The position numbers were made by a program, and so were the translations under genes. DNA of 64,000 nt from Leucoraja ocellata (taxonomy: Eukaryota): contig JAWMAR010000026.1 of the NCBI GenBank assembly GCA_036785375.1, forward strand, positions 12,028,001-12,092,000, given 5' to 3'. Below the pieces are notes generated by a model that saw only the letters and a program-made list of their open reading frames with translations, was not told where the DNA came from and made no database searches. The first letter of the stretch is position 1. Each line of letters begins with the position of its first letter. Shown in pieces: positions 11,473 to 53,256 of this stretch.

Positions 11473-11518
11473 ATGTTTCTGGTCCTGATTCTGTCTCTCT
11501 CCGTGATTATTTTCACAG
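11473..11518 (+). CDS. Gene A exon 1, signal peptide [15 protein letters not shown]
   Basis: ATG, hydrophobic leader, phase-1 donor CAG|GTACAT; typical IgSF leader exon. Confidence 0.85.
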
Positions 11519-14500
11519 GTACATGAACGATCTCATGTAAACTTATATAAATGCCAAAATATTCCGAACTATTCCTGGCTTAACTGATGAAATGTATTTT
11601 TCTATTTGTCTGTCAGTTTTGTTTTTCATGCCAATGTACTATCAAAAGAGTTGGTTCTACATTGAATATAATTAACCAAATCTTAAACGTTTTTCCAACA
11701 GCTGCTGAAAAAACTGCGATCCACGTTACCCAAATTCCAGAACGAAAGGTTATATTGAAGGGAGCAAACGTCACCTTTCACTGCATAATCCCACTTGCGG
11801 ATGACAGTTCGGGAATCGAAGTGCGTTGGCGAAAACAGGGCGATAATGAATATATACAAAGCGACGCTGATGGCAGAAAACGATTCACCGTCAAAAATAG
11901 ATCAGGCGGATATTTTGATTTACTGAACACGACCTACGAGGATTCGGGAAACTATCGCTGTGTAGTCATGCGTCAGGGGGAAATTAGCGGAGAAGGAACA
12001 GGGTCAGAACTAACAGTATGTGGTGAGTGACGAAAGTGGACAGAATACTTGAGAATATTGCACAAGAATTATATCTCTATATTAGAGTTCCGATTTGTGA
12101 GAGAGAAGGGCCCCATGAAATTATGTGAAAACCATACAATTTGATGCTCGTTTTATTGAATGTACAAGGTTCAATATTATTATGCCGAAAATATATGTTA
12201 AAATACAGCAAATAAGATGTATTTCAAACAAGTAACAATAGCTTTCATTCAAGAGATCATCACACCTTCAAATACGATCCAGCATAAATCACTATCAATT
12301 GCACCTCCAAAAGATTCCACATTTCATGTCATTGAACGCTGGTTGAGTTGAAACAAAATTAACTTTCCGCGGCGGTTCTTGCGCTCCGCTGTATAAGTAA
12401 CAGATGTCAATAATTCGTTAACTTCTGTCTTCAAGGGATCGGGTAAAATATGTGGATTTCTAAACAAGCTTCTCCTACTGTCTGTTTAATTTCATTCCAG
12501 TAATATGATATTTTCGCACTCTGTCCCACAGCCCTTCCAACTCCACTGAAGATTAACTGGACATCCGAGAGCAATTCATCTGCAGCTACAACGCTTGTCT
12601 GTAAAACGGCCGAGTTTTACCCGGGTGATCTAACCCTTCTATGGTATAAAAATAGCGTTGCTGTTACAGCTAAGGCTGATGCCATTAAACAGAAAAACAG
12701 TGAAGGGCTGTACACGGCTTCCAGTTCATTATCCATGACGCAGTCGGAGGCGAACGGGAATATTTACATTTGTCTGGTGATACACATCTCCCTCCAAAGA
12801 CCCGCCATTGCCACGCACGCCCTTCTCAAACCCGGCCAAGGTATGACTTGAAACACCGTATAATTTTATAACTTATTATTGAAGTCTGCGTTTCTGGATG
12901 TTGACAAAGTTACGTTTAAAGGGATCACAAATAATAATAAATATAATAATAATATTAATAATAATAATAATAATAAAAATAATATCGTCGTAATGACTGT
13001 CTATTCTAACGGGTCCCAGAAAAACTTATTATTTCTGGTAACTCTGGAAGTATGTATATGAGATGGAAGGGATGGTATTTATTTTCCCTCTAAACATTTT
13101 GCGTCGTTTGCTCATTCTCCAGAGGCTTCATACTAAATTTATTGTTTAGTTTATATTGCCGGATTTCGTGACAGATGTCGAGGAACGTGTCTTTGTTCTG
13201 GAGCCTGCCCCTAAAATAGTGCATCTCGAGATTCCAGTATTGAGCTGTCAGGATGTTTCCTTTCCAAGCCATGGGCAATGGGCTCGGAAGGTCCCTCCTT
13301 TGCTTGACACGGCCTAATCTTTTTCACTAATATCGTATTAAATTATGGATTCACAGAAATAATGGCAATGTATATTTATATTTTACCTTTAACTGGATAT
13401 GTGCGTCAATGGTGAGGGCTAAGGTTATTGCCAATCCCCGGCTGCTCGAGAAAATGTGTTTTACGCCTTCAATAATGGTTGCAATCCCTGTGTATTCACA
13501 GGGCAACATATATGGAACTACGGCTATGATGGTGGAATGCGAAATGTGCCTACTTTTTTTGCCCTCGCTGATGGAAGTAGCCGATTTAGTAGCTACTGTC
13601 GACCAATCTTGGCGAGCCCTATATTTTTATGTGCTTCACAGGCACTATTGCGATGCAGGATCTAACAAATAATAACATAAGCAGGATCTGAAGAAGGGCC
13701 GAAACGCGCCCATTCCTTCTTTCCAGAGATGCTGCCTGTCCCGCTGAGTCACCCCAGCATTTTGTGCCTTAAACCAGTATCTGCAGTTTTTTCCTCCACA
13801 ATAAAATGAGCATGATGCACTGATCCTTGCTACTGCAGATCAGCGAAGGATATTAAATAAACTATTTTACTCAATTCAAGCGAATTGTTAGTCAGACTAT
13901 GGGGCGCCATTGTCAAGTAAAAGAAACATTACTCCCTTCCACCAATACTTATTCCCCTGATTTAAATAATGCTCAGTACACCGGAGACTGATACGGTGCA
14001 AATTATTCACGGCAGCCAAATTACTCAGGTCGCATGTTACATTTTGCCAGTAAAAAATAATTACTGATGTCAGAATAAAAAATACTTTAAAAATGAAATG
14101 CAAATTTGACTATCTTTTTACAGTTATCTCGCGCTGCTCCGTGTAGTTACCGTAAGCTTAGAAATCAGTTCAGTCACAAGTAATTCCAATAACGATTCTT
14201 TTAATGTATCAAAAGTGCCCAAAGTGTAATTCATTATTTTTCCTCATCTTCCAGAACTCGCTAACCAATATCTCTATATCTGGGCTTCTGGGGTCGGTGG
14301 AATCGCCATTTTGGTGTTTGTATTTATCATTGTCCTGAGGTGCCGTTCGACAAATAAAAGTAAGTATTATGCTCACCGATGTGTTTTCTGAGAACCTAGA
14401 CAACAATGTAGATAATTAATACAATTTCTAAATGATAGAGCTGCTATGCAATTTTGCAGGAATTTGAATTGCACCGGACATGACAGATAATTCAGTATTT

Positions 14501-17500
14501 ATAATTTAATAGTGATCACAGAAGAAAGAAATAGAAATATTGTTCTGCTTATTTGCAAGAGTATGTTTGAATTTTAGATATGGAAAAGTGAAATCTAGAT
14601 GAATTTCAGGTGCAACTGCTTTGAGCAGGATGGTATTAGTGCCCAGTCGAGAGGAAATAGCGGATGCTTGGCGGGATCACACTTTTAAATTAAATATGAT
14701 ATGTCAAAATAATTCCCAACCACAAATGCAAACTTTGGGCTGTTCATTAAGGAATTGTAGAAAACGATCCTAATTTGCTGCACATGAAAATTCAATTCAC
14801 ACCATGATCTCTTATTGATAAACTTTCTAACATTGTTTCAAACGTTCTCATTTGGTTGTATCTGCAAGAGTCCTCCAACTACCCACCTCCCGCCGCCACA
14901 GTTCATTCATAATCTTTTTCGCGATATGATGCATTATAGACACGGTTTGCAATCGCAATCGAAGTCAAAGGGGGGTAGTATTTAGACGCAGCAGTGTGAA
15001 GCGTTGTGAACACTTTTTTTCGAAAAGGTATTTGAAGTAAAATCTCATGTGACGAATGCAGTATAGATCTCAATGTAACCGTTGGAGTATGACATGAACA
15101 CGTTAATGTTGCTTAGATATATGATCTTGTCGTTTTTTATCTGATTTAGAATAAATAATGTTGTAAACGCACAAAAATATCGTTGAATATTAAGAAACAT
15201 GAAAACTAGAGGGAGACAGAAAGGACTGGATAGAGGGGATGTGTAGAGGATGTTTCCACTTGTGGGAGAGTCTAGGACCAGAGGCCATAGCCTTAGAATA
15301 AAATGACGTACATTTAGAACGAAAGTGAGGAGGAATTTCGTCAGTCAGGATGGTGAATCCGTGGAAGTCATTGCCACAGAAGACTATGAAGGCCAAGAGA
15401 ATGGATAGGTTTAATGGCGGAGAGTGATAGATTCTTGATTAGCACGTGTGTCAAAGGTTATGGGGAGAAGGCAGGAGAATGAGGTTGAGAGGGAAAGACA
15501 GGTTAGCCATAATTGAATGGCGGAGTAGAATTGATAGGGCGAATGGCTTAATTCTGCTCTTATAATTTATTAATTTATGAACAGTAAACGTTGTATTTGC
15601 ATGGACAGTTGCATTCTGCATTTGAAGTAAGATAACGTTTCTCTCTCAAATAACGCCTGTCTTAAATAACTCAATTATTCACGAGTTTATTTTAAATTAA
15701 TCCTATCGTACTAGAAACATAATCTTATGTTTCCTCTCTCCGTGAAATTCATTATGTCCTCGTTAAAGAAAGAACGGTTCTTATAATTGCACCAACCCTC
15801 AAAGTCCTGCATCGTTTAACGATGTTCTCGGATACGAATTTAACCCGAATTTCAATAAATGCAATCATCATCTGATATTGCTTGATGCATTGGATGGGCA
15901 ATTTCATTGACGAGTCCGCTAAGCTCCAGAAATGCTCTTCGTCACTTTTACAATTCACCATGTTCAGGCATATTCATAATCGAATATATGTGTGACTCTG
16001 CATTGCCCGCCATTTTTGCTGAATGGATAGCACATTGGCTCCATGGAAGGAAGCAGAGAGTGATAGTGGAAGGTTGCTTCTCAGAATGGAGGCCGGTGAC
16101 TAGTGGTGTGCCACAGGGTTCGGTGCTGGGCCCGTTACTGTTTGTCATCTACATCAATGATTTGGATGAGAACATACAGGGGCAGGTTAGCAAGTTTGCT
16201 GATGATACAAAAGTCAGTGGTTTTGTAGATAGTGAAGAAGGTTGGGAACGATTGCAGCATGATCTGGATCGATTGGCCAGGTGGGCAGAGGAATGCCCAC
16301 GGGACGTCGAACAAGGGCAGGACCAACACAGTAAATGGTAGGCCTCTGGGTAGTGGTGTAGGGCAGAGAGATCTAGGAGTACAAGTGCATGGTTCCTTGA
16401 AGGTCGAGTCACAAGTTGGTCAAAAAGGCTTTTGGCACTTTGACCTTCATCAGTCAGAGTATTGAGTATAGACATTGGGAGGTCATGTTGCAGTGGTATA
16501 AGAAGTTGGTGAGACCGCATTTAGAATATTGTGTTCAGTTCTCGACACCATGTTATAGGAAAGACGTTGTCAAGCTTGAAATGGTCCAGAAAAGATTTAC
16601 GAGGATGTTGCCAGGGCTAGAGGGTGTGAGCTATAGGGAGAGGTTGAGTAGGCTGGGTCTCTATTCCATGGAGCGTAGGAGGATGACGGGAGATAGAGAT
16701 ATATTAAATCACGAGAGGAATAGATCGGGTAGATGCACAGTCTTGCCCAGAGTTGGGGAATCGAGGGCGTAGGTTCTAGGTGAAGGGGAAATGATTTAAT
16801 AGGAATCCGAGGGGTGACTTTTTCACACAGTGGGTGTATGGAACAAGCTGCCAAAGGAGGTAATTGAGGCGGGGACTATCCCATCGTTTAAGAAACAGTT
16901 GGACCGCTAACTGGATAGGATAGGTTTGGGTGGTTATGGACCAAGCGCAGGCAAGTGGGTCTAGGGTAGCTGGAACATTATTGGCCAGTGTGGACGAGTT
17001 GGGCCGAAGGGCCTGTTTCCACAGTGTATCACTCTATGACTGCATGATTCTATTTAATCTCATTGCTTATTGCTTTCCCTGCATACAATGATAGGCTCTT
17101 GTTTAACTGTTACATTAAAACAGTATTAATAGGACACGGGGAAATGTTTTACCGTTATTTATAATTTAATTTCATTAACTTTTAGAGCAAAGGAGTACCG
17201 GGGGCCATGAAGAATCGGTATGCATTTATGTATATATACATATATATTACATTTGAGGAAACGGTTGAAGCATCTATAAACAAGGTTGTAAAACAAGTAT
17301 TCTGCTAGAACTATTTCGCAAAAGTATCCATCGCTATCGCGAATCTGTCAAATTGTGTTTAACATTCATTTGACGGCAGTTGCGACGTTAGTGTAAATGG
17401 TTATAGGAAGAGACAATTTAAATTGATTAATTAATTCCGCATATACGTAGATAATAACTACATTAATCGCTCCAAGTCTTACGTTTGAACTGAGTAATTC

Positions 17501-18848
17501 CACCTAGTGATGCTGAAACCCATCAAGTTTAAGTTCAGTGGATATATTCTACTTAAAACCCATACAAGTCTTATAGTTTTAGATTTATAAACCATATATT
17601 TTGTATGTGTTTGGAATTACTCCATTGCGCTCACTGGCAAATACGCAAGCAACGATAATGGCACTTGTGCAGTCATGTGAATTATTTTCTTCCTGATCCA
17701 TGCAGGTTGAGGCGAACAACATCCTGACTTATTCTGCTGTAGATATGAGCAATTCCAAAAGGAAAGGGAGACAGAAAAGCGAAGAGGAGACATCCTATGC
17801 ACAAGTAAGATTCTGCAGCACATGAAGAAAACATAGAAAGCGACGCAGAAAATAGGTGCAAAAGAGCCATATCCTAATGTCATAAATCATGAGACATAGG
17901 GGCAGGTACTGGCCATTCAGCCCATCGAGTCTGCTCCGTCATTGGATCATGGTTGATCTATTTTTCCCACTCAACCTAATTTTGCTGCCATATCCCTGTA
18001 ATTTTTGACAACCTTACTAATCAAGAACATGTCAATCTTTGCTTGAAAAATATCCAACAAATTGTCCGCCACATCCGTCAGTGAATCTTCTATCCAAGAG
18101 TCAAGCGTCAAGAATGTTTTATAGTCATATGTCCCATCCACGCTAGTACCTTGCCTCTAACTCCATGGACTCCTATCTTGTTTAGGAACTGCATGTGCGT
18201 CCTGAAAATCCAAGTAAACATGGTCCATGGTCTCTCCTTTGTCCATCTCCCCTTAAAACTATGCTGACTTCGGCCTGTTTCACAATATTTTAAGTACCCC
18301 GAAACCTCATCATTCATAATGTACACTAATATCAGACCAACCACTGAATATCTGGGATTGTTGGCACAAGCGACTGCAGATGATGGAATCCAGTGCAAAA
18401 AAAAAAACAACGACGCATCACCAGGCCAGCCTGCATCCGTGGAATGAAAAAATCAAGCGACATTTTAATCCGAAGAAGGGTCGCGATCCATCACATAGTT
18501 TGTTATTTTTCTTCCACATGTGTTGCCAGGCCTACAGTGTTCGCTCCAGTCTATTTACTCAATATCTGCGTTTGTCCCAACGTTGGTAGTGTGGTGCGTC
18601 TAAAGTTGTGCGGGTGTTTTTGATACCTGACTAGATCCGCGGGCCACAACCTGGTTCAACAATTACATCTTTTGCAACCGTTGGTTTTTCAGGTAAAACA
18701 ACGGACCGCCCGGGAAGTACTTACATACGCATCTGTGGAATTGTCTCAACCCGGGAATGCTGGTAAAGTTAAACCTAGGGATAAGGTCACGGAATATGCT
18801 GCGCTGCAGACGGCAAATCCACGAAGAGTAAAAGATGACGGAAAGTAA
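11473..18848 (+). CDS. Gene A (span): Ig-superfamily V(J)-C1-TM receptor with a four-tyrosine inhibitory tail, SIRP-alpha/NCR3-like, ~355 aa; exons 11473-11518, 11702-12022, 12532-12840, 14255-14359, 17186-17217, 17706-17804, 18693-18848
   Basis: All introns are GT..AG with consistent phases (1,1,1,1,0,0). The exons join into an open 1068-nt CDS with one domain per exon (signal, V, C1, TM, three cytoplasmic exons). Confidence 0.88.
11702..12022 (+). CDS. Gene A exon 2, V-set Ig domain with J-like G strand
   Basis: [36 protein letters not shown]: B-strand Cys, C-strand Trp, DxGxYxC and GxG motifs. Acceptor ttttccaacag, donor G|GTGAGT. Confidence 0.95.
12532..12840 (+). CDS. Gene A exon 3, C1-set Ig domain (not in the ORF track)
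   Basis: Translates as [54 protein letters not shown], with the FYP and YxCxVxH C1 signatures. Acceptor ctgtcccacag, donor G|GTATGA. Confidence 0.95.
12930..12983. repeat. (AAT)n microsatellite
   Basis: Directly visible. Confidence 0.9.
14255..14359 (+). CDS. Gene A exon 4, transmembrane segment
   Basis: [35 protein letters not shown]; polypyrimidine acceptor ..tcttccag, donor A|GTAAGT; phase 1/1. Confidence 0.9.
15190..15580 (+). mobile_element. CR1 3' fragment
   Basis: Similar to the 4130-4490 3' region. Confidence 0.8.
16015..17052 (+). mobile_element. CR1 RT/3' fragment
   Basis: [26 protein letters not shown]; [10 protein letters not shown]. Confidence 0.9.
17186..17217 (+). CDS. Gene A exon 5, short cytoplasmic exon ([11 protein letters not shown])
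   Basis: Acceptor cttttag, donor TCG|GTATGC. Its 32 nt convert phase 1 to the phase 0 needed by exon 6. Confidence 0.7.
17706..17804 (+). CDS. Gene A exon 6, cytoplasmic ITIM (LTYSAV) plus ITSM (TSYAQ|V)
   Basis: [33 protein letters not shown]; acceptor ..catgcag, donor CAA|GTAAGA. Confidence 0.85.
17878..18350 (-). mobile_element. Degenerate CR1 fragment in gene A intron 6
   Basis: Antisense CR1 3' UTR plus deleted RT pieces. Confidence 0.7.
18693..18848 (+). CDS. Gene A exon 7, terminal exon with ITIM (LTYASV) and ITSM-like TEYAAL
   Basis: [51 protein letters not shown]; acceptor gtttttcag. Confidence 0.85.
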   Translation, partial: VKQRTAREVLTYASVELSQPGNAGKVKPRDKVTEYAALQTANPRRVKDDGK

Positions 18849-21800: not shown

Positions 21801-22300
21801 CATGAAATTTTCACATATTGTGTAAAAACATCTATATAAATCACCCCTGAAACTCGATATGAAGAAGACTTGCACATTTTTATTAAATTAGAGAAAAACC
21901 AAAAAAATGTCGGGAATTTTTTAGTCCAAGCAAAGCACATTTAACATTGATTTGTCTGCCAGTTGGCCAATCACGCGCTTTGTTTCAGGCTAGCACACAA
22001 AATGGCTGAGGGGGCTTCACAGATGCCTGTTTTACTGGAGATTCCGATGTGTTGTTCTGTGGAATAAATGTCGTGGAAACTTGCAGCAGGTGATTGTATT
22101 TAGTGGGAAAAGCATTAAAAAGGCTGAAGAAAGTGCTGCGAAGTGGATTAAAGTGCAAGAAAGCCTTCAAAGTCTCTGCTGATGTGCTGGAACACAAAGA
22201 AGGCCCCCATGAATCAACTAACTGAAAGGTAAGTTTAAAGTCTGAATTTATGAAAATCTATCTGTATGGACTTTAATTAATTTAATTGCACCATTTTATA

Positions 22301-22538
22301 NNNNNNNNNNNNNNNNNNNNNNNNNNNNNNNNNNNNNNNNNNNNNNNNNNNNNNNNNNNNNNNNNNNNNNNNNNNNNNNNNNNNNNNNNNNNNNNNNNNN
22401 NNNNNNNNNNNNNNNNNNNNNNNNNNNNNNNNNNNNNNNNNNNNNNNNNNNNNNNNNNNNNNNNNNNNNNNNNNNNNNNNNNNNNNNNNNNNNNNNNNNN
22501 NNNNNNNNNNNNNNNNNNNNNNNNNNNNNNNNNNNNNN
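22301..22538. other. Assembly gap (N run)
   Basis: 238 N. Confidence 1.
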
Positions 22539-22570
22539 TTCATTCATGAAATTGAGGGCCTAAACTATAA

Positions 22571-24644: not shown

Positions 24645-25078
24645 GCGATTTTAAACGCGTTTGGGTCAACCGACAATCTATGAACACCAGCAGCAAACAT
24701 GGTTTTCACGTTTAATTCACGCGTTCACCGGAGTTTGTAGCTAACCCTGATGGCTTGAAATAAACTTCAGGCGTTAGTGTAGATTAAAGATCTTGCCTTT
24801 TCGGTCATGCAATGATTAATGTTATCACTAAAATTACCAATTCATCAATCGCAAATTCCGGAGCACTGGTGTAGATAATACATTAAAACTGTCTGCAAGT
24901 TTCGAAGGAACATTTGTTATGGCAAAGTCCGCTAAAGATATTCCACTGAACATCATACATTTTCTGTGATATGCGGTGCTGATACGTTGCGAATGCCCAA
25001 AGAATATTTCCAATTATGAGAAGAGCCAAAGAAAGTGAGAAAGTTACTTCAAGTTTTCAAAATAGAAAATAGTGGAAA

Positions 25079-26415
25079 CAAGACTCAGTGGGACCCATTG
25101 GGTCCCGTGTTCACAAGGTCCCCCAACGCAATATTCCACTCTCCACCAATTCCAATATTGGTGGCCAGTGGGGGGGCTTTCTGGAGCACTAGTATGGGTG
25201 TTGTGGGCTGAACGGTCTGGTTTCCCGAGGGCTGGTATGGACATTGTGGGCCAAATGGATTCTTGGATTGGCAGCTCAGTCACTCAAGCCTGATGTGCTG
25301 ACAGCTCACTCACAGCTGGTGGGCTGGCAGTTGACTCACGGCTACTCCTTGAAATTCAATTTCAAGCAGGGTGCAATGCCACCAAATTCAAATGCAGTTT
25401 CCTACCATTTCAAGCAGGGTGCAAGGCTACCAAATTCAAGTGCAGTTTCTTACCACTTCTAGCAAGGTGCAAGACTACCAAATTGAGCTGCAGTTTCCTA
25501 CCACTTCAAGCAGGGGGCAAGGCCACCGAATTAAAGTGCAGTTTCATTCCACCAAGCAGGGTGCAAGGCCACCAAATTCAAGTGCAGTTTCACACCATCT
25601 CAAGCAGGGTGCAAGGCCACCAAATTCCAGTGCAGTTTCACACCATTTCAAACAGGGTGCAAGGCCACCAAATTCAAATGCAGTTTCTTACCACTTCAAG
25701 CAAGGTGCAAGGCCACCAAATTCAAGTGCAGTTTCATACCACTTCAAGCAGGGTGCAAGACTACCAAATTGAGCTGCAGTTTCCTACCACTTCAAGCAGG
25801 GGGCAAGGCCACCGAATTAAAGTGCAGTTTCATTCCACTTCAAGCAGGGTGCAAGGCCACAAAATTCCAGTGCAGTTTCACACCATTTCAAACAGGGTGC
25901 AAGGCCACCAAATTCAAATGCAGTTTCATACCATTTCAAGCAGGGTGAAACCACCATAAACCACCATAAAACCACCGTAAAACCATACAAAACATCACAA
26001 AACATCACAAAACATCACAAAACACCACAAAACACCACAAAACACCACTCACTGTTCAGTAGACATTCAGTGTGTTCAGTTGGTTCACAGCTCAGACCAA
26101 GTGGTGACCTCTCCCTCCCTATCTTGCAGAAACTGAGCCACACCCACACTTTCGGGGTTTTATAATCCCTCCCTCTCCTACCGGAAGGGGCGTGGTCTTC
26201 ATGGCATGATTGACAGGAGAGAGATTCTCAACATTTATAAAACACTAATAACACTTTTATGTTTCATTGATGGGAAAAATCCTCTTGTCCTGCGCAGCAG
26301 AGGCGGACTCTGAGTAAGATGGCCAAAAATCACAGCCGTATGTGGCAGCGTTTTTTCTAAAATCAATATACAGAACAACAGGAAAGTGGTCAAGATCAGA
26401 TTTTAGTAGTATAGA
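25079..26415 (-). mobile_element. Non-autonomous Helitron
   Basis: On the minus strand: A|TCTATACTAC.. 5' end; subterminal hairpin GGGACCC-aat-GGGTCCC (25090-25106); CTTG|T 3' end (CTAG variant); A|T insertion site with no TSD. Confidence 0.8.
25361..25947. repeat. 48-bp minisatellite, ~12 copies, inside the Helitron; followed by a 10-bp (AAACACCACA)-type repeat to ~26048
   Basis: Unit TTCAAGCAGGGTGCAAGGCCACCAAATTCAAGTGCAGTTTCATACCAY is visible repeatedly. Confidence 0.95.
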
Positions 26416-28370: not shown

Positions 28371-28379
28371 TCCTGCTCA

Positions 28380-38254: not shown

Positions 38255-38457
38255 TCAGATATTCATTGGGATATTTTTCCTTTTACGATGTTTTTTTACT
38301 TTTGGCTTGGCATCGGTAACGTCTGCTGTTGTGATTGGGTTCCACTGTGTCATCTGTGTATTCCCTTTAACTGTTTCCTCTTTCAGATTTTTAGGATTTG
38401 CCATGATAGGTTGCATGCAACGTACGCAGGTCTTCATTTGAACCTTGCCTTTACGTG
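38255..38457 (-). CDS. Gene B exon 5, cytoplasmic tail
   Basis: Strong acceptor ttttactttcag, in phase with the TM exon; ARKGKVQMKTCVRCMQPIMANPKNLKEETVKG...KPKVKKHRKRKNIPMNI*. Non-repetitive sequence, but supported only by splice phase and openness. Confidence 0.65.
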
Positions 38458-41400: not shown

Positions 41401-44400
41401 GTAGGCCAGGACACTATAAATGTACTTCTTGTATATTGTTCTAACTGAACAATAAAATGTGATATGTTTAAGAAGGAACTGCAGATGCTGGAAAATTGCA
41501 GGTACACGAAAAAGCTGGAGAAACTCAGCGGGTGCAGCAGCATCTATGGAGTGAGGGAAATAGGCAACGTTTCGGGCCAAAACCCTTCTTCAGACTGATG
41601 GGGGTGGCGGGGAGAAGAAAGGAAAAAGGAGGAGGAGGAACCCGAGGGCTGAGGGATGGGAGGAGACAGCCCGAGGGCTGAGGAAGGGGAGGAGACAGTA
41701 AGGGCTAACAAAATTGGGAGAATTCAATGTTCATGACTGCAGGATGCAGACTCCAAGCGGAATACGAGGTACTGTTCCTCCAAAATGTGATAATTAGTCA
41801 ATTAATGTCAGAGGGTTTCAATTAAATGGTATAAAGATGTTGTGTTTGTTTGGAAGGCCGTACTTTTCTGTACAGGCAGGAATTCTCTGCAAGATTCCAC
41901 GTTCTGATGAATAAGATAAACCAGAAATTATTTATAACTTGATCACTTTCATTCATGAAGCCAGAAAAGAACAAGACAATTAATTTGGGAAATATGAAAA
42001 GGATTGCAGCATTGAGGTGCAAGTTGATTTTGGTGCTCAGCAGCTCATCGGCCAACCGGAAACTTTTACATCTCCATTTTAAAACACAAAGCGTTTTCTT
42101 TTGCTGCACAAAACGGAAGCTCCATCACACACTTCTGGCTTAAAGAAATAATAATAAATTAAAGCTAACTTTTCTTCAATTTAATACTCCAATCTTGCCG
42201 TGAAGGTGAAAGTAGCCTTAATTGTATTAAGAAACATGAGCTATGGGCCAAGACTACACAGAATTTTTTATGTCAGAAGATTAGAGGTGGGAAGGAACAT
42301 AATGAACTCGAAAAACTGGAGCGATCTTTAAGAATCACTTCCTTTTATTAGCTGATACCTAGCGTCATGTACCCCTGATATTCAATGCCATTACCATCTT
42401 TAAATACCCCACCAACAACATCCTGAAGGTCACCTTTGAGCATAAATTCAACTGAACCATAGATAAACAATGTGCCTATAAAGCAGGCCAGATGGTGGAT
42501 ATCCTATGGTAACTTGCTTGCACTATTAACATCTAAGTTCTTTTTAGCACTTACAAAGCACAAGTTAGGAGTGCGATGGAATACTCTCCACTTGCCTGGC
42601 GATTGCAGCTGCCACAATTCCCAACAATCCTTCTTGTTGAACAATAATTTGAAGTAGTAAAGACAAAATATTCCGTGGCTGTGGACCCTCCATCCCAAAC
42701 TTGGCTTGTAGCATGTGTGTTGGCTGACTCTTGAAAACGAGTCCATAGCTGATAGTGAGTGAACCAACACAAACAATAAAAAACACTTGACCTCACTCTC
42801 GCCAATTCACCTGTGGCAGATACATCTGTTCATGATAGCATTGATGGAAGGGAACACACCATTAACTTTATGGAGACAGATCATTACTTGCATGCTGGCA
42901 TTCAACACTAGTTGAATGGGGAATGCAGAAGGACATGCCAAAAGCAGTACTAGGCAAAATCAAAAATGACGATATGTTAGCTTTGTGAGACTGCAATGTT
43001 GGGCTACAATTGTGTTAAACAACAAATGCAAAATGTAATTAACACAGCTGAACAATCTCACACAAATAGATCAAATGAAAGTTCTGCAAATCCCACAAAA
43101 TCTAGTTGTAAGTGAAGCTGCATCTCAATCATGACATCCCTAACACATGAATGCTAGACATGGCCAAAGCTTTCAAGCTACGTTCAATCAAAAATGGCAA
43201 ATTGATGGCTTTGACTTCCTCCTAAAATCCCCTTCACCACAAAAAACAACCTTCATCAATTTAGTTCTCTCCACATAACTGCAATAAATATCCAAGAGCA
43301 GTAAATACACTGAATACTTTGCTTTAAAAGGCACTCCGTCTAAGCTGAAAATTCAATGCCCATTGTGGATGTGTCCAATTTGCAATACTTAATCCTATTA
43401 CAATGTACAGCACAGAATAAAAAACATAACAATGTTTTTATCTGATTAATATAAAATAACTTTTTTGCTTGTTATAATTAGTGAATCAATGTAACACTAA
43501 AATCATTGAAAAGAGATTGTCCCTTACCTTTGCAGAGTTTATAACTGACTATTGCTACAATAATCAGAAGCAGTAGAGACAGTACTACACAAAGAGGAAT
43601 CCACCAAGGTAAAGTAGTTTTTGAACTGACATCTGGAAAGCAGATATAAAACAGAAATAAAATCACTTGTACTCTCAAGTCAAATGATGATTTGGGAGGT
43701 TACGACATTCTGAGGGCTCTGCATAAAACTATATTATAAAGTAGATCTCCCTGCGCAAAACAGCACTAATGTTCAAACCAATATTTAAACCAACAGAAAT
43801 AAATAGTGTGATTAAACTCATTTAAAATATAATACCTCAACCTAACGTATAAAGAGTTTTGAGAATCTCAGTTCCATTACTGGTTGGTGGGGTTCAAAAC
43901 CTTTGAGTTAACTAATGGAGTTATTTTAAACTGTTATAATGTGAAAAATACAGAACAAATTCTTCACACAAAATTTAAGCAATTACATTTTTGACCAATT
44001 AATACATTTTATGAATGTTAGAACACAGAATGGATTAGCACTGAATAGGCCATTGCCCCATGATGCCTGTGCTGATCTTGATACCAAATCAAACTAAAAC
44101 CTTCTGCCTGCATATGATCCATATCCCTCCAGTCCCTGCATATTTATGTGCCACTCTAAAAGGCTCTGATCTGTTACTATCAAAACTGCTTCAACCGCCA
44201 GCACATTCCAGGCACCCATTACTTTCTATGCAAAAAATCTTGCAGCGCACTACTCCTTTAAATATTCCCACTCTCAGCTTGAACCAATGCTCCTTTGTGT
44301 TTGACATTTCCACCCTGGGAACAAGATTCTGAAGAAGGGTCCCGATACGAAAGGTAACCTGTCCATGTTCTCCAGGGATGCTGCCAGACCCGTTGCATTA

Positions 44401-47400
44401 CCCCAGCATTTTATGTCTGGTTTGATTGTTTCCTCTTCCTTTGCCTCTCATGACTTTGTAAACCTATATCAGGTCTCTTCTCAGCCTGTAACGCTCCGGG
44501 GAAAACAATCCAAGTTTCTCCAACCTCTCCTTATAGCTAACACTCACTAATCTACGCAATATCCTGGTCAACCTCTTCATCACCTTCTCCAAATTCTACA
44601 CTACTTTCCTGTCCTGTAATGAGGTAATCAGAATTGCATACAATACTCCAAATGTGACATAAGTAAAGCTTTACACAGGTGCAAAATGACTTCCCGATTC
44701 TTATACTGAATGGCTTGACCTCCGAAGTCAAGCAAACCAGATGCCTTATTTAATACAAAGATAGACACAAAAAGACTGGAGTAACTCAGCGGGTCAGACA
44801 GCATCTCTGGAGTAAAGGAATAGCTGATGTTTTGGGTCGATACCTTTCTTCAGACCTTTTTCTGACCTGCTGCCTGACCCGCTGAGTTATTCCAACTTTT
44901 TGTGTTTAACTTTGATTTAAACCAGCATCTGTGGCTCCTTCCTCTGTGCCTTCTTTAATACCATCCACTTCTGGTGCTACATTCAGGGAGCATTGTACTT
45001 GGACACCAAGACCCCTTTGTACATCATTATTATTATGGGTTTTGTCATTAAATCCTCTTACATTTGACCATCAAATGTGCAGCAGCTCACATTTGCCCAG
45101 ATTAAACTCTATCTGCCATGTGTCCACCCAAAACCTCTTGTATCCAGTTGTATTAATTGATGGTCTTCTTAACTGTCTGCAACTCCACTCATTTTTGTGT
45201 ATTCTGCGAACTGGCTAACCATTCCATCTACATTTTCGTCTGAGTCATTTATATATATCACAAACGAACAGAGGTGCCTGCGCTGATCTCCGCAAGCCAC
45301 CACTGGACACACACCTTCAACCAGAATTATGCCCTTCCATCACTAACCTCTTTTCTATGGATTAGCCAGTTCTGAATCCAAACTACCAAGTCACTGTGGT
45401 TCCCTGCATTTTAGTCTTCTGGCGATAGACACAAAATGCTGGAGTAACTCAGTGGGTCAGGCAGCATCTCTGGAGAAATGGAATAGGTGACATTTTGGGT
45501 TGAAACTCTGTCTTAGTCTTCTGGTTTAGCTACCATGAGATAATGAGGTGCCATCATTGTTCTGAGATGCAAGGAAATCTGGGTGCATGAACTGAAAACA
45601 TCTAGCATTCAGGTGCAGCAGGTAATTCACAAACCTGTCAGAACATTTTCTTCTATTATATTTTATTGCTGGGGCAATTGAATACAAGAGTAGGAAGACC
45701 TTGATTTATTTACATTGGAAATTGATGAGCCCACATCTGGAGAATCTAGTGCAGTAATGGCCTCCTTGTTTAAGTAAAGACTAATATGACAGAAGTAGTT
45801 CAGAGACAAGTAAAGACTAATGCCGTGCCTTACAGGAAAAGGTTTGACAGGCTAGGATTGTGTCTGCTGCGATTCAACAGAGTGAGAAGGGTCCTGATTG
45901 ATAAATGTAAAATCATGAGAAGTCTTGACAGGGTGGAAATGGAAAGGATATTTCCTCACAGAATGATTAGTTGTCATTGTTTAAAAAAAGGATCACATAT
46001 TGAAGGCAGACGAGGGGGAATTTTCCATTCTCTCTAAAAGCTTTGACAAACTCTTCCTTTAAGGGGACGGAAACAGAGTCTGTTAATAATTTTAAAGCAG
46101 AACGAAGCAAATACTAATTCAATAATGGGCTGAAATGTTTAAGGGTTGCAAGCATGGATTTGTTAAGGGCATATCATATTTAAATAATTTGAGATAACAG
46201 ATAGAGTTAATGAAATTAATGCAGTTCTAGCAATGTTTTGTGTTAAGTGCCCCATACTACACTTATCAGCAAAGCTGAAGCACAATCCTTAAAAGGAGAC
46301 AATAAAAAAAAATTATCGTTGGCAAAGTAAAAGATAACAAGAGCAATGTAATGAATGGTTTTCTGACTTAAATTGTGAATAGTGGTGCTTCTAGGTGTCA
46401 GTTTAGGATCATTGTTTTTTTATAATCTATTTTCATAACCTAGAATTAGGGGGTCAAGCCAAAATTTCGATATTTGCAGATGGCATAAAACTTGGTGTAT
46501 TGTGATTAACAAAGAAGATAGGGATATATTACAGCCAGATATAAACCAGCTGGTGATAGATGAAGTTTAATGTGGAGAAATATGCATGATGCAATTTGCT
46601 GTGAAGAATGAGGAAGAGAAAAGGATACTTTTCTAAATGGGGTGCAGGAGAAGGGGGATCTGTGCACAAATCATTAAACGTGGTTGGGGAAGTTAGGCAA
46701 GTGGATAATAAGGCAAACACAATCCTGTGCCATCAGTAAAGACAGAGTATGAAAGCAGAAATTTTTGCTGAATCTGTATAAAATTCTTGTTTGGCCTCAG
46801 CTGGAAATATTATACTAATTTCTAGTCACCACATTATCGGAAGGACGTGAAGATGTTAAACAAAATTGGTTCCTAGCGCTATAATCATGACAGAAGTTTA
46901 GACTGTTTTGATTGATTGTTTGATTGACTGATTGATTGAAAGTACAGCATAAAAACTGGCCATTCAGCCCACCAAGTCCATGCCAACCGTCGATCACCCA
47001 TTCACCAGTTCTGCATTATACCACTTTCGTATCCACTCTCTATATACTAGTGGCAATTTACAGAAGCCAATTAACCGAAAAACCTGAACGTCTTTAGGAT
47101 GTGACTGAAATATGGAGCACCCAGGGATATGGAGCACCCACCCATACAATCACAGGGAGAACATTCAAACTACACACGGACCTGAGGTCAGGTTCAAAAC
47201 TGAGATTCTGGTGCTGTGAGACAGCAACTTTACATGCTGTGCCATCCTTTCTTTGGAGAAGAGAAGGCCGAGGGGAGATTTGATGGATATATGTATAAAT
47301 TGATGAAGGCTAGAAAATGTATCGAGATAGTGAAACACAAAGACCAAAGGGCTGTCATTAATAATGGGGGAAGTGAATGCATTGCCTATGGATGTAATGG

Positions 47401-50400
47401 AAGCAGGTTCTGCTATATCATCAAAGAGATGAATTGTATTAATATATGCTGCAGAAAAAAATGCAATGCCGGAGAGAATGTGCTGGTGCGGGGAGACTAG
47501 TGATTTGTTCTGGTAGAAAATCAGCACACACATGATGGGCTAAAAGGGCTCCTTGTGTGATGTAATCATTCTATAATTCTGTGGCATATTGATCCCATGT
47601 ATAGAATGAGTAAGTAACCGAGGCATGAAAATAATCATAAATCCATGGATGCTGGAAATCTGAAGTAAAAATACAGAAAATGCTAGTAGCACACTGGAGA
47701 ACAGGCAGCATCTATGGAAAGAGAAAAAGAATTAACCTTTCAGGTTGGAGATCATTCTTAACTCTACGTATCTTTCCATAAATGTTGGAGGAGCTGCAGA
47801 GTTTTTCCAGTACTTTCTGTTTTTAACTTTAGATATCTCATCAGTTAAAACAATTGTGCAAAAACACATCAGCAAAGAATTACATCCAGGGAAATATTGA
47901 ATAAAAGTGGACCTTAAGAAGTAGTGTAAAGTCATGTCACAGAGCTTAGCAGCTGCAGCTGGTGTGTACTGTTATTAATCTTAGATACTCCATGCAAACC
48001 CAGTTTCTGAAAATTCAGATTTTAACTCATTGCCTGCTAGGTATTATTATAACAAAAAAAATCAACCAGACACAGTGTAATCATATACAAATTAAATTAT
48101 TTGTCAAAAGAGGGATGTTTCTACCTGCAAGGTTGACAGTATAAATGGCCGAAGCTGGAGCTTGGAGCGTGGAGTGAGACACTTCACATGTGTAGATAGT
48201 TCCTTCCTGCGCTGGCTCTGTGTCGTGCAAGTAGCTGGAAGCTTCAGTTAGATGCTCTGCGTTAAGCTGATCATTTGTTTTTACTCCATTCGTAATTCTT
48301 TGACCATCTCTATACCAAGACAAGATGTAGTCTGCAGGAAAGAACCCAGAGGTTTTGCACAGCAGAGAACCATCTGCATCTTGTGATTTCATAATCGTCA
48401 TTGGTGCTGGGGAAGCTGTAGAAAATGTTAAAAGATAACATATGTTCCGATTTCAATATTGCAAACAAGATGTGAACCGATATACTTGTCTGGTGTACAT
48501 TGGAAAATGTTAGAATATTCCCTTTTGTAATATTTCACTCCTCCATTATTAAAAGGGATTATTCGCTGACATGTCTGGTCTATAGAACATTTTGGTATAA
48601 CAATCTGACACCATCTTGTACAAAAATGTTATAATGGGGACTTATTGGGTAAATGTGTTCTGTTCTGCACTGTAAAGATCTATGTGGCTATAAAATTAAA
48701 AACGGACCCAATCATGATGAATCCAAATTAACTCTGAACTTGCCTACTTATATTTTACGCCTACATTAATGAAACTGAGACGACCTGGTACATTTGCTGG
48801 AAATGGGAAAGGAAGAAGCTATCCCGCACACTTAATGGTTTTGTTCAACAAACGTGTAGGTACATACCCGAGTAAATCAGCCTGAACTGAATGAAGTAGT
48901 GAGCTAGGTTGGCACAGAATGAGATGCCCTGGCCTAAACCCAAATATAGGTTGTGTAGCCTGAATTCCAATTATGCCTGTCTTGCACTTAAATATAATGT
49001 GTTCATTTTGTGAAATTAATACATTGTTAAAGTAGGCAGCTACCATTCTCTCATCAAATAGCTGAGACATAAAAACAGCTTTTTTCCTCCACGAGCAATA
49101 GCTCTACTCAATAACCAAAATTCTGTAGCCCCCTTTGGCTGTGGTATTTTATTTAATTCACATGTTTAATCAATAATGTTTTATTGTTAATGTTGACTGT
49201 TTTATGTGTCATTCTTAATTGTCGCTGTATGTCATGTTGTCATTTGCGGGCGGAGCACCAAGGCAGATTCCTTGCATGCGAACTTGCTTCGCCAATAAAC
49301 TTATTCATTCATTCATCAAAAAATTCCATTGTCAGGTAATATTTATGTCTCTATTAAAACAAAGCTTGACAAAGTAAAAGCTTGTATTTGGCAAAGGAAC
49401 AGCAGCATTACCATAATAAGCTAGTTTCTAAAAAATGTAATAACATTTAAAAAATGAAATTTTGATGCTTGTACCAGAGCATAAGCTTTATGCAGTTTGC
49501 CATCGAAGGCATCTATACAAGGCTTCAAGAAGACAGCATCTATCATCGATGATTTCCACCAAATGGCTTATGCTCTCTTTTCTCTGCTACTGTCAGACAG
49601 GTGGTACAGAACACTAACGTGTAGCAAAGAACTGCAGATGGTGGTTTAAATTGAAGATAAACACAAAATGCTGGAGTAACTGAGGAACAGGCAGCATCTC
49701 TGGAGATAAGGAATGGGTGATGTTTTGGGGCGGGACCCTTCTTGTACAGAACACTAAATTCCCACACCACCAGGTTCAGGAACAGCTATTTTCCTCCACC
49801 ATCAAGTCTTGAAATGGCCTTCATGATCTTAATACTTCCTCAGCAGTGAAATGCTATGGACCACCTCTTGCACAACAATGGACTTGATTTTAAATCTGTG
49901 TAAGAAAGAACTGCAGATGCTGGTGAAATCGAAAGTAGACACAAAATGCTGGAGTAACTCAGCGGGTGAGGCAGCATCTATAGAGAGAAGGAATGGGCGA
50001 CATTTCGGGTCGAGACCCTTCTTCAGAATCTGTTTTGCACAAAATTATTGTATTACACATTGTTTTTCTTTGCACTGGCTTTCATAATTTATGTTTAATT
50101 TGCCTGCCTTTGATGCTGTTGTAAGCAAGCTGTTCATTGTACTTATAACTTACTGTATTTGGGCTTGTGTCAATAAACTCTACTTGCCAAATAATTTAGC
50201 ATAATTATCATACAAAGCTGTAGTCTACAAAGTGTAACAAAGTGTCAAATAAATTACCGATAAATTAAGAAACATTTTAGAATATTAAAAATATATAATT
50301 TGCATCGTATAATTAAATAATAATTGATAATGTGGGGAAATGGCTGCCAGGACCATTCATATGAAATATAGGTCTTTACCTATAGGAATGATACATTTTG

Positions 50401-53256
50401 TTCCAAATATTCACACTGTTGCCACTTGTTCTCACCCCTTTCCACTAACTCCATCCCACCAAACCCCATTCTTAAACAGTAAGATGGTCTGCTTAAATCA
50501 TGCATTTCAGTGGTACAATTTATCTGCTGCATCCTCTGTTAAAAATGCTAATAAGCATCTACAATTAAAGAAAACCAATACCATTATTGATACTTAATCT
50601 AAAGCAGCGAACATTACATATTATTAAAGGATAGGCACATGCTTTGACAGAGAATGCAACAGAAATAATGCATACATTCTCAATTCTATGAAACATCTTT
50701 AAATAAAATAATATCCTCATGTTGCATTGGGACGATAGTCTGTCAGTCAATTTGGCTTTTATAAATCAAAAACGGTAAGAAAGTAGGTTGTATGAAAGCC
50801 GATGAGTCCCTTGCAATTATAATAAGGGCTATTTAACTTCAGGTCAGTGTCAGTACTTGTAAACTGCACAAATTAACCATGATTTTCTGGAAACACAAGT
50901 TACAGAACATAGATTACATCATTTATATATCCAGAAATAATCCCTAAAGGAGCCTATTCAGATAACGATTAAAATTGAGATGTCCAGAAATTAAGTTTTT
51001 GTTTTGTCAATCGCTGGTTGGCACATTCACTCGTCCACCTTTTTCCTCTGAAGACACAAGGTTTGAAATAGAGACAGGGGCAATTGGTGGATGGGAAGGA
51101 AGAGAAATTGGTATATTTCAACGTTTAACATTTAATTATTAAAATTTCCAATCGGAATGGGATTAATATTCTAGAACCGAATAACTGAATGTGTAGATTT
51201 GGGACTGATCAAATAAAAATAAAGGTATGGAACTTGAGCGGGCGAGTAGCCGTCATCATCCTTCCGCTTCGGGGCACCCGCGACCCCTGAAATAACAGCG
51301 CAACTCTAGCACATATTTGTGTAAGATTGTTTGAGGAATTGGTCCATTTGTAATCGTAGAATCTCGCAATTTGGCTTTGAAATTCTTTCGATACGTAATC
51401 CAATGTATGTAATAACATAACGCTGAATGAGTCTGGGCTTGATTAGTAATTTAACTTCGTGCGACATTACCAAACGAAAGATGTCAATGAACTGTGCAAA
51501 TTTAGTCCAAACTGCCCCACTTCAGACACAATCGGTTAAAGACAAATGCATCTCAAATACAACCGGCTGGTGGGGAAGGGAAATTTAAAGTTAGAATATT
51601 GTTTATACTATCCGAGCGACTAACTGTTCAGTTTTGGAAATTAAATACAGAGCACCAGATACGTTCACTGCGGTTAGCACCAATTAAGTTTCCCCAATAT
51701 ATTTATGTTATTAAATTGACTGCACCATCGGACGGCACGTGTAGGGCATTAACCGGAGACAGTTCAGTGCAATTATCCCATTGCAACCCGACTTTCCAGG
51801 AATTTTTGTTTTGTTCCCCGGGTGGAAGTCCATTCTGATGGGATAATGAACGCGCCAGTGCGTAGATAGAATTCTACCCCAGCATGCTTGAGCATGAATC
51901 AATACGCTACTCTCCCGTGAAGTATATTAGTATATTACACAGACCACTAGTGATGTACCAACATACATCGATAACTCAGATCGCCATTTTCCATCAGCCC
52001 AGTTAATTTGCCTTCCACCCTTTCGGCAGCTCCTCCAGTTTATCCTGGAAGTAACCATATAACCATATTTCCCTTCCTGTGGAATGTTGCAACTAATTGG
52101 GAGCCTAATTGTTTATTAAGTAGCGGGAATTGTGTATTAAGTAGCTGTTTGTAGAAAGCGTGGCAATCCCCCTTGGATGGAACACCTGAAAAGTGTTTGC
52201 AAAACAAATACTATCAACGGCAATCCAGATTTTAACCCCCCCCCCCACCCCACCCCACCCCCACCCCCACCCACAGATATGTTCAGCCGATGCCCGCGTT
52301 TGCCGCACGGAATTAAAAAGGGATGATACAAAATGTGCATTCGGCGCGTTCATTTACGAATACCCCCTTCCATTATTATACATGTCATGGTCTCCCGTGG
52401 TTCACAATGCCCGGTACCAATATTCCCTTGTGCCCCCTGTCATTGCTGTAAGGTTTTGCATGACAGCGACCATTATTTACACGTAGTGTATGAATCGTAA
52501 ATGAAAACTTTACGGGAATATGTTTTAGCTACTTTATTCCCTTCATTCAATCCAGTCTCCTGTCGCACTGCACCGGATCAACATTGCCCCGAGCCAGGTT
52601 CATAAACAAAAGTGGCAGCATGTCGCTGAGAACGATCGCTCACCTTTTACATCAAGGGTTGCACCTGTTCCATTTCCAGTGTATTCACCCTCCACTCTGC
52701 AGTAATAGATTCCGGCGTCTCCGAATCTCACGTTCACAATCTTAAGCGAAGCGCTCGCTTTAGATTCCACCTGGAACACTTTCCTGGAATCTTCTCCCTC
52801 TTTGAAAAACTTCCGTTCTCCTGTTTTCCACCAATACATCCTAATGTTATTTTTATCTCTAAATAGCCCGAACGCGCATTGCAAAGTCGCGCTCTGCCCT
52901 ACCAATGCATCGACTTTATCCGGCATTTGATGCACCTGCGTAACCTTGGCGAATGCTGCAAAAATAAACGGAAAACAGTGTGTATATTTGCGAAAGGCTC
53001 AGGACAACAACAAACTTTCTCGTCTTTCAGTTAATTTTAACAAATCCATGGAAATGGCGACTTGCTTTAATGTACAAACACCACACGAACAGATACCTTC
53101 CAAAGACCTGACACAATGAATTAAAAACAGCGACAAAACAAATGATCATTAATTTGCTAAGTGAACTCGTCGCTTCATGTGCAAGTGTTTTTGAAGAATA
53201 CCTGTGCAAATAACGGCCAGAATGAGGAAGGGGTTAAATTCATTTTTTCCATACAT
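38255..53256 (-). CDS. Gene B (span): Ig-superfamily V(J)-C1-TM receptor, paralogue of gene A, with a CxxC tail lacking Tyr signalling motifs, ~321 aa; exons 53256-53202, 52955-52644, 48415-48125, 43632-43528, 38457-38255
   Basis: GT..AG introns, all phase 1; open 966-nt CDS; domain-per-exon layout identical to gene A, including a 105-nt TM exon. Confidence 0.85.
38900..39335 (-). mobile_element. Penelope-like ORF N-terminal fragment plus pLTR piece
   Basis: LSDTEQSVLNKGLTFI..DVELFYLRAFF. Confidence 0.65.
41465..41782 (-). mobile_element. Penelope-like 3' end/pLTR
   Basis: Reverse complement of 6280-6575. Confidence 0.8.
43528..43632 (-). CDS. Gene B exon 4, transmembrane segment
   Basis: DVSSKTTLPWWIPLCVVLSLLLLIIVAIVSYKLCK; acceptor ctttccag, donor G|GTAAGG. 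Confidence 0.9.
44020..47580. mobile_element. Cluster of old CR1 fragments (both strands) interrupted by pLTR-derived repeats and a SINE
   Basis: Degenerate CR1 RT/3' similarity; short repeats at 44328, 44755-44950 and 45425-45510. Confidence 0.65.
48125..48415 (-). CDS. Gene B exon 3, C1-set Ig domain
   Basis: ASPAPMTI..SLLCKTSGFFPADYILSWYRDG..ASSYL..YTCEVSHSTLQAP; acceptor ttttctacag, donor G|GTAGAA. Confidence 0.95.
52644..52955 (-). CDS. Gene B exon 2, V-set Ig domain with J-like G strand
   Basis: QVHQMP..GQSATLQC..MYWWK..ASLKIVNVRFGDAGIYYCRVEGEYTGNGTGATLDVK; acceptor tttttgcag, donor G|GTGAGC. Confidence 0.95.
53202..53256 (-). CDS. Gene B exon 1, signal peptide MYGKNEFNPFLILAVICT
   Basis: ATG, hydrophobic core, phase-1 donor ACAG|GTATTC. 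The exon end ATTTGCACAG|GT resembles gene A ATTTTCACAG|GT. Confidence 0.75.

Follow-up and report, generated by a model that had tools for sequence, protein, structure and literature searches.

What kind of molecule is encoded by a gene that carries the variable and constant domains of an antigen receptor chain, ready joined, in the germline? The question is raised by two genes, here called A and B, in a stretch of 64,000 nucleotides (nt) from Leucoraja ocellata (assembly GCA_036785375.1, contig JAWMAR010000026.1, positions 12,028,001 to 12,092,000 of the forward strand). This whole stretch is hereafter the window, and positions are counted from its first letter. Immunoglobulin (Ig) domains of the C1 type occur only in antigen receptors, MHC, tapasin, beta-2-microglobulin and SIRPs (PMC2785349), and never-rearranging VJ-C1 genes have been sought as relics of the receptor that the RAG transposon had entered (PMC12227049, PMC10751288). 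A preliminary description of the window, made from its letters, had tentatively read the two genes as a singular two-gene system of this kind. Our combined findings suggest, with good confidence, that the window instead contains two intact paralogous genes of a chondrichthyan multigene family of non-rearranging type I membrane receptors, each composed of a short V domain with a J-like strand, one C1 domain, a transmembrane (TM) segment and a tail that varies within the family.

Membership in this family was assessed with hidden Markov models (HMMs) built from 22 of its members, which were run against each of the 1625 open frames with 25 amino acids (aa) or more in the six frames of the 64-kb window. 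Exactly two V exons and two C1 exons were found, i.e., two genes with one C1 each. Among 195 fetched proteins, 98 score 76-162 bits with the C1 model and all others reach 54 bits or less. The C1 exons of genes A and B score 115 and 94 bits, and their V exons 121 and 107 bits with the V model; both genes are therefore members of the family. Their sequences also make them clear paralogues of each other, with 34 of 105 residues identical in V (32 %, BLASTP E-value (E) 1e-19) and 35 of 96 in C1 (36 %, E 6e-20), while their TM exons gave no BLASTP alignment.

We then estimated the breadth of the family. With the C1 domain of gene A as query, phmmer returned 691 matches (E <= 1e-3) from 1.84 billion representative sequences. 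Half of the best 150 were proteins rich in C1 or Ig domains, for instance one from a shark called 'titin-like' and one from a frog. The other half were single-C1 proteins of 200-420 aa, 40-64 % identical to the query, with C1 at about residues 123-225, a position that in proteins of this length implies a layout of leader, V, C1, TM and tail. Tetrapod SIRPs were absent from the best 150 of the 691 matches. The family occurs in 14 species (Callorhinchus milii, Heptranchias perlo, Heterodontus francisci, Chiloscyllium plagiosum, Scyliorhinus canicula, S. torazame, Mustelus asterias, Cetorhinus maximus, Carcharodon carcharias, Pristis pectinata, Amblyraja radiata, Hypanus sabinus, Mobula hypostoma and M. 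birostris) and thus spans chimaeras, sharks and rays. Homologue searches with a single family member and with the family profile passed 21 of 1438 and 37 of 5626 candidates, respectively, all of them chondrichthyan, as expected if these are cartilaginous-fish genes; since the search needs shared 5-residue words, this outcome says nothing on absence in bony vertebrates. The relative closest to gene A is Pristis pectinata XP_051884095, with 77 % identity in V, 63 % in C1, 54 % in TM and 65-66 % in the tail exons, which points to a batoid as the source of the window.

The supposition that the genes are of an unrecognised kind is not supported, for their relatives already carry names in the databases. 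The 37 profile relatives include 11 under a name of SIRP-alpha, 'tyrosine-protein phosphatase non-receptor type substrate 1(-like)', and two 'SIRP beta-1-like'. A further 11 are called 'tapasin-related protein-like' and two 'NCR3 ligand 1-like', one each bears the name 'CD276 homolog', 'Ig lambda-like' or 'MHC class II beta-like', and eight are uncharacterised. In the literature within reach, which excluded subscription journals and supplements, no account of a SIRP-like V-C1 family from cartilaginous fish was found; further VJ-C1 genes may appear in the supplements of PMC12227049 and PMC10751288.

Gene A lies on the + strand at 11473-18848, and the reading of its sequence gives a leader, V with J-like strand, one C1, a TM exon of 105 nt and a tyrosine-containing tail (ITIM, immunoreceptor tyrosine-based inhibitory motif; ITSM, immunoreceptor tyrosine-based switch motif; pLDDT, per-residue confidence of the AlphaFold2 (AF2) model):

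11473-11518, + strand: putative exon 1 with start codon and signal peptide, 46 nt, ending in phase 1, with an ACAG/gtacat donor and a hydrophobic product; it lies outside the RNA-type contigs
11702-12022, + strand: V exon with germline-joined J-like strand, phase 1-1 (Pfam V-set E 6.4e-7, Ig_3 E 1.2e-8; family V HMM 121 bits; AF2 pLDDT 89.9)
12532-12840, + strand: C1 exon (Pfam C1-set E 3.6e-13; family C1 HMM 115 bits), both junctions present in record 24 of run X5
14255-14359, + strand: stalk and TM exon, 105 nt, uncharged span, 54 % identical to its counterpart in protein P0012 and present in X5 record 24
17186-17217, + strand: putative cytoplasmic exon, 32 nt, phase 1 to 0, placed from the contig and a scan of candidates
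17706-17804, + strand: cytoplasmic exon with LTYSAV (ITIM) and TSYAQ(V) (ITSM-like), Tyr-Tyr spacing 22, 65 % identical to P0012 and present in X5 record 24
18693-18848, + strand: last exon with LTYASV (ITIM) and TEYAAL (ITSM-like), Tyr-Tyr spacing 23, stop codon at 18846-18848, 66 % identical to the P0012 C-terminus; it lies beyond the read-covered stretch

Gene B, on the - strand from 53256 to 38255, has the same layout up to the TM exon, followed by a candidate tail exon:

53202-53256, - strand: putative exon 1 with start codon and signal peptide, 55 nt, phase 1, read from the sequence
52644-52955, - strand: V exon with J-like strand GNGTGATLDV (Pfam V-set E 2.8e-11; family V HMM 107 bits; AF2 pLDDT 92.5)
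48125-48415, - strand: C1 exon (Pfam C1-set E 6.4e-12; family C1 HMM 94 bits)
43528-43632, - strand: stalk and TM exon, 105 nt, uncharged span, from reading of the sequence
38255-38457, - strand: candidate last exon with a basic tail containing CxxC, no Tyr motif and a stop codon, chosen by acceptor and phase fit

Every exon border in both genes is canonical (AG/GT), and the ectodomain and TM exons all share phase 1, as is usual for immunoglobulin superfamily genes. Searches and fold predictions were run exon by exon or with natural database proteins. Much of the preliminary description stands on this reading. The layout of leader, V with J-like strand, C1 and 105-nt TM exon is borne out in both genes by the DNA and by Pfam, and all ten of its quoted peptide motifs (10/10) are present, once each, in the expected places and on the expected strands. 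The four inhibitory-type Tyr motifs that it had ascribed to gene A are those listed above, and the TM exon of gene B indeed contains neither a charged residue nor a Tyr signalling motif.

Gene A is transcribed and spliced. Logan contigs of four runs were aligned to positions 11900-17899, which lie within gene A. Record 24 of run X5 (842 nt) consists of 11900-12021, 12531-12838, 14253-14359, 31 unplaced letters and 17705-17808, running from C1 straight to the TM exon. In record 1 of run X1 (518 nt), comprising 11905-12021 and 12531-12838, V is spliced directly to C1. The offsets of 1-2 letters at the contig junctions are letters common to the exon end and the acceptor, and the contigs fit the exon borders exactly. 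The depth of X5 in unique intron bins of gene A is almost nil, and the X5 contig carries the same alleles as the DNA-like run X2 at 12562, 12681 and 12698. The X5 contig is best read as cDNA, the spliced product of the gene A locus.

The contig also corrected the first exon list, in which the exons given were real but one was missed. The TM exon ends in phase 1 and the exon at 17706 starts in phase 0, and therefore one exon of 3n+2 nt was lacking. The 31 unplaced letters together with one ambiguous G give this exon a length of 32 nt. Among 13 stop-free candidates of that length between 14360 and 17705, bounded by AG and by GT or GC, 17186-17217 stands out by its pyrimidine tract and its GTATG donor. 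The translation of this candidate resembles KHGKTAGHEDL, the corresponding stretch of the Pristis homologue. With the 32-nt exon included, the coding sequence of gene A totals 1065 nt (355 codons).

Two observations on gene A are recorded here in their own right. Over 11900-12926, about 1 kb, a contig of the DNA-like run X2 differs from the window by 19 letters and 16 gap positions; among the latter is a deletion of 12 nt at 12245, within the V-C1 intron. This suggests marked allelic or individual polymorphism at gene A. In addition, an extra cysteine stands right after the J-like strand of gene A (..LTVC, 12020-12022) and is absent from the V end of gene B; TVCV is also found in P0101, P0084, P0103, P0075 and P0178. 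This cysteine may be free or may form an interchain bond at the V-C1 hinge.

Both genes are non-rearranging, in agreement with the preliminary description. The V domain and a J-like strand of the GxGTxLxV type lie within one exon, the CAC[AT]GTG heptamer of recombination signal sequences (RSSs) is absent from both strands at 11400-12600 and 52500-53300, and the cDNA-type contigs follow the germline V exon of gene A colinearly. The constant domains are genuine C1 domains, also as claimed. Pfam C1-set beats C2-set_2 (E 3.4e-4 and 1.1e-3) by nine orders of magnitude. The hallmarks of C1 domains are 13 residues between Cys(B) and Trp(C), the motif [FY][FYH]P, and xVxH after Cys(F) (Hatherley et al., PMC2785349). 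All three are present in gene A (13 residues, FYP, LVIH) and in gene B (13 residues, FFP, EVSH). No Pfam family matched the tail exons of either gene. The AF2 models of the two V domains are short V/I-type sandwiches of about 100 aa without a C'' strand. Fold searches with these models were undiscriminating, with Z-scores of 12.4-14.4 tied among NCAM Ig1, IgNAR V, CD79b, T-cell receptor (TCR), antibody V, PD-1, CD8 and NKp30; SIRP d1 was not among the best 50 fold matches of either model, which does not exclude likeness.

The tails suggest how the family may signal. A rough count over the 98 family proteins, with isoforms counted in, found ITIM/ITSM-like motifs in 42, a short tail with Arg or Lys (mostly Arg) near the outer TM end in 13, and a short or motif-less tail with an uncharged TM segment in 10, whereas 33 had no detectable TM segment (partial or secreted). 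This pattern holds at the level of the family and not within the window. Such ITIM-tailed, basic-TM and short-tailed forms follow the ordinary logic of paired receptors. Gene A is of the inhibitory type: in each of its last two exons an ITIM stands ahead of a TxYxx[VL] motif, and the four Tyr motifs are all conserved in the Pristis protein. Upon ligand binding, Src-family kinases would phosphorylate the two ITIM/ITSM-like pairs, which could then recruit the tandem SH2 domains of SHP-1 or SHP-2 and damp cell activation, as in SIRP-alpha; the motifs are the basis for this scheme. Judging from its motifs, gene B is most likely a non-signalling or differently coupled counterpart, comparable to SIRP-gamma.

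In appearance, and probably in function, the family is like SIRP. SIRPs are defined as V-C1-C1 proteins, with an inhibitory alpha, an activating beta and a non-signalling gamma form (PMC12975943). They are reported in mammals, birds and lizards, and a review calls their evolutionary origin unknown (PMC9652883); according to a survey of 2026, the family arose in Tetrapoda (PMC13262535). Like SIRPs, the genes studied here have a non-rearranging V domain with J-like strand, a true C1, a TM segment and a tail, which in gene A contains four tyrosines in two ITIM-type pairs, and the chondrichthyan family has inhibitory, basic-TM and short-tailed forms in the manner of alpha, beta and gamma (PMC12975943). 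When the 22-member profile was compared with the PDB, SIRP-alpha (2wng) ranked 6 with 100.7 bits, matching V and C1 in one stretch (profile 24-215, chain 3-205), and SIRP-gamma ranked 14 with 88.3 bits. They were the best cell-surface receptor matches other than Ig and UrIg chains, among which UrIg2 reached 117.7 bits (rank 2, a sum of three C domains), a chimeric Ig chain 120.5 and Ig light chains up to 86.7. In the ESM Atlas, the named clusters nearest to family member P0054 were 'PTPNS1-like' and 'Signal regulatory protein alpha', both at 0.97. Unlike SIRPs, the family has a single C1 and a short V of about 100 aa that lacks C'' in the model, and its basic TM residue is mostly Arg near the outer TM end. 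In SIRP-beta, a TM Lys pairs with DAP12. On balance, the family resembles SIRP more than any other cell-surface receptor that we compared, and is a possible rather than an established member of SIRP proper. The preliminary description had held that its proposal would fall if both genes belonged cleanly to a characterised family. This applies only by half: they belong to a SIRP-like family whose orthology to SIRP is putative, and a paper characterising it was not found in the literature searched.

Several points weigh against these conclusions. The SIRP link is unspecific by sequence, as Ig chains (about 81-120 bits) and UrIg2 score like SIRP-alpha. SIRP d1 is absent from the best 60 PDB matches of each single V exon, which include NAR-V, TCR and PD-1, and NKp30 for gene B only. 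There is one C1 per gene here compared with two in the definition of SIRP (PMC12975943). The automatic names of the 37 relatives are inconsistent. The inhibitory role suggested for gene A is read from its motifs, and the position of its 32-nt exon is tentative. None of the four runs is recorded as RNA, and a processed copy elsewhere in the genome could formally be another source of the spliced contigs. For gene B, the closest relatives are only 42-50 % identical with no closer orthologue found, and its branch is long (0.98 in the C1 tree and 0.75 in the V tree). Its tail exon is a candidate chosen by phase fit, and its transcription is putative.

Some of these points bear on two alternatives that we consider possible in different degree. 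The family could be a true chondrichthyan orthologue group of the tetrapod SIRPs, with gene A as the SIRP-alpha equivalent that binds CD47 on self cells, a possibility that we take seriously but find rather doubtful. It would account for the order of V, C1, TM and four-tyrosine tail, the alpha-, beta- and gamma-like forms, the place of SIRP-alpha and SIRP-gamma in the profile search, the ESM Atlas clusters and the SIRP-type names on 13 of the 37 relatives (NCBI/UniProt), and one member, P0013 of Amblyraja, is itself V-C1-C1. Yet the single C1 of both genes, Ig light chain and UrIg2 scores equal to or above those of SIRP, the V exons without SIRP d1 among their best 60 matches, and the dating of SIRP to Tetrapoda (PMC13262535) argue otherwise, as does the only neighbouring gene seen, which is OGFOD1-like by a weak match. 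OGFOD1 is not known as a neighbour of SIRP in human. The other alternative makes gene B a silent copy or one in decay, not a functioning receptor, and is unlikely. It has the longest branch of the family in the C1 tree and a long one in the V tree, no close orthologue, and a tail exon to which no similar tail was found among the 195 fetched proteins. It also departs from the family at two nearly invariant positions, G183 and Y185 (A1 numbering). A search with its V exon, in which only two candidates were examined, gave one match, the short protein P0195, an unspliced reading of this very locus that runs on into the intron. Nevertheless, the reading frame of gene B is open in all four core exons, whose splice sites are canonical and whose phases match. 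The gene keeps both disulfide pairs, the Trp residues, DxGxYxC, the GxG strand, all C1 hallmarks and nearly all other invariant residues. Its HMM scores (107 and 94 bits) fall inside the range of the family, and its V model is confident (pLDDT 92.5). An intact family member is the reading that we prefer for gene B.

Three further explanations concern the place of the genes among antigen receptors and their relatives. That A and B work together in one system, as a TCR/Ig-like heterodimer or as a receptor and its ligand, in a convergent unit that is a relic of a pre-RAG antigen receptor, was the central proposal of the preliminary description, and we regard it as very unlikely. It draws on the V-C1 layout of TCR and Ig light chains, on the match of the C1 exons to Ig CL/CH and UrIg2, on the tail-to-tail adjacency of the genes in the assembly, and on the usual pairing of C1 domains in cis (PMC2785349). 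But both genes have an ordinary place in a family that numbers at least 98 fetched proteins, they have no stalk cysteine and no complementary TM charges, the cysteine after the J-like strand is found in A only, and their adjacency rests on a scaffold gap. The family might instead be the chondrichthyan survivor of a membrane-bound, non-rearranging VJ-C1 chain ancestral to both SIRPs and the rearranging receptors, with a single membrane-adjacent C1 like TCR and with A and B perhaps pairing via C1. This is an improbable reading, though one with consequences: SIRP-type checkpoints of self and non-self would then go back to the first jawed vertebrates, and the family would be a living model of the pre-RAG receptor, a signalling cell-surface molecule unlike UrIg. 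Least credible to us, and only barely conceivable, is that the genes encode B7/butyrophilin-type ligands or tapasin-related proteins. Fourteen of the 37 relatives bear names that would suit it (tapasin-related protein-like, CD276 homolog or NCR3 ligand 1-like), and the weak C2-set_2 matches would suit it too. Against it stand the far stronger C1-set matches, C1 hallmarks that are wanting in domain 2 of CD80 (PMC2785349), the V domain with its J-like GxG strand, and ITIM/ITSM tails that are receptor-like. Moreover, only Ig-type Pfam families were found on the window exons and on all 37 relatives, with V directly following the signal peptide and no N-terminal tapasin domain. TAPBPL, by comparison, has a large N-terminal tapasin domain ahead of its Ig domains. 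The evidence thus favours two ordinary members of a SIRP-like chondrichthyan receptor family.

Comparison with other known non-rearranging and rearranging molecules gave no identity. Like the genes studied here, elasmobranch UrIg/UrIg2 (PDB 9dmx) has a non-rearranging VJ exon followed by C1-type domains, and UrIg2 is the second-best PDB match of the family profile and a top match of both C1 exons. However, UrIg2 was crystallised as V-C1-C2-C3 in disulfide-linked homodimers with an Fc-like C2-C3 (PMC12227049), compared with the single C1, TM segment and ITIM tail here. One C1 followed by a TM exon in both genes rules out UrIg. NKp30 (NCR3) shares the non-rearranging VJ-type V domain and is the best single-domain PDB match of the gene B V exon (E about 2.5e-4). 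In the fold comparison with this V domain it has the highest sequence identity (31 %; Z 13.2, root-mean-square deviation 2.4, 99 residues), but its Z is tied with dozens of unrelated V/I domains and it is not among the best 60 sequence matches of the gene A V exon. NKp30 consists of a single VJ-type domain followed by a stalk and TM segment, with no C domain, whereas both genes have a C1 exon between V and TM, and this identity was rejected as well. TCR and Ig light chains share the V(J)-C1 ectodomain, and the C1 exons match CL/CH1 at E 1e-12 to 1e-19 over the whole chain. Unlike those chains, the genes here have no V/J split, no RSS and no membrane-proximal interchain cysteine, and gene A has an ITIM tail instead of CD3/CD79 coupling. 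A rearranging Ig or TCR gene was rejected on the V and J-like strand in one exon and the absence of an RSS heptamer. The PRARP genes of chicken, which Fu et al. are said to have described in 2019, reportedly encode a single V domain without C1.

A few family members depart from the single-C1 layout. P0013 (Amblyraja radiata), P0178, P0179 and P0005 have two C1 domains or two V-C1 units, and the two C1 copies of P0013 are nearly identical (branch lengths 0 and 0.029). Doubling of this type could be a real exon duplication that gives a SIRP-like V-C1-C1, or could come from fused or duplicated gene models.

How old is the split between A and B? The preliminary description had proposed an old inverted duplication. 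We built a C1 tree (78 family rows and 6 outgroup rows, 101 columns) and a V tree (53 rows, 102 columns), after dropping identical rows, rows below 70 bits (C1) or 50 bits (V) and rows with fewer than 80 HMM positions, which took out the partial V of P0012. Both trees are poorly resolved. In the V tree, gene A groups with two shark proteins (SH-aLRT branch support 96) and gene B lies in the other half on a long branch; in the C1 tree, gene B is an unresolved long branch. The V domain of gene A is 59 % identical to a Heterodontus protein and 32 % identical to that of gene B. This ordering of identities fits a duplication older than the split of sharks and rays, though an approximately unbiased (AU) test does not reject a clade of A and B (p 0.313) and this age is not proven. 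The proposal is thus retained for the duplication and its possible age, and nothing indicates that the duplication was inverted in place.

The arrangement of the two genes is likewise supported in part. They lie on opposite strands of the assembly, as described. The sole run of Ns in the window, at 22301-22538, lies 3.4 kb past the stop codon of gene A and 15.7 kb from the candidate last exon of gene B, within AT-rich non-coding DNA. No exon or reading frame crosses this gap, and therefore neither coding sequence is affected. The gap has all of gene A on its left and all of gene B on its right, so that their convergent, tail-to-tail adjacency depends on the scaffold join.

The remainder of the window contains a neighbouring gene and repeats:

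59873-62340, - strand: exon-like open frames of a neighbouring gene, a possible synteny marker; 59873-60325 weakly matches the Ofd1/OGFOD1 C-terminal domain (Ofd1_CTDD, E 0.015, below the Pfam cut-off) and the open frame at 61915-62340 has an acidic stretch
511-4398, + strand: nearly full-length long interspersed nuclear element (LINE), with a possible ORF1 (511-1194), an endonuclease domain (1443-2093, Exo_endo_phos E 1.4e-11) and a 742-aa frame (2173-4398) with a reverse transcriptase domain (RVT_1 E 1.2e-29)
15907-16772, + strand: fragment of a related LINE reverse transcriptase (RVT_1 E 2.1e-11), in the gene A intron between the TM and 32-nt exons
25361-25947, between genes A and B: tandem array of a 48-nt unit, 12.3 copies with 86 % matches, open in two + frames (open reading frames 25371-25772 and 25483-25959) and followed by a 10-nt repeat at 25948-26048

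Logan contig depth reaches hundreds of thousands over 15100-17100 and 13700-13900, indicating high-copy repeats.

Taken by itself, the window makes a modest contribution: two correctly delimited genes of the family, with gene A transcribed. What is new is a form of SIRP-like paired receptor that has only one C1 and comes from a lineage for which SIRPs have not been described. If the family is homologous to SIRP, such paired receptors would have been present at the base of the jawed vertebrates, as they are found in chimaeras, sharks and rays, and the family would add a membrane-bound counterpart to the secreted UrIg genes.

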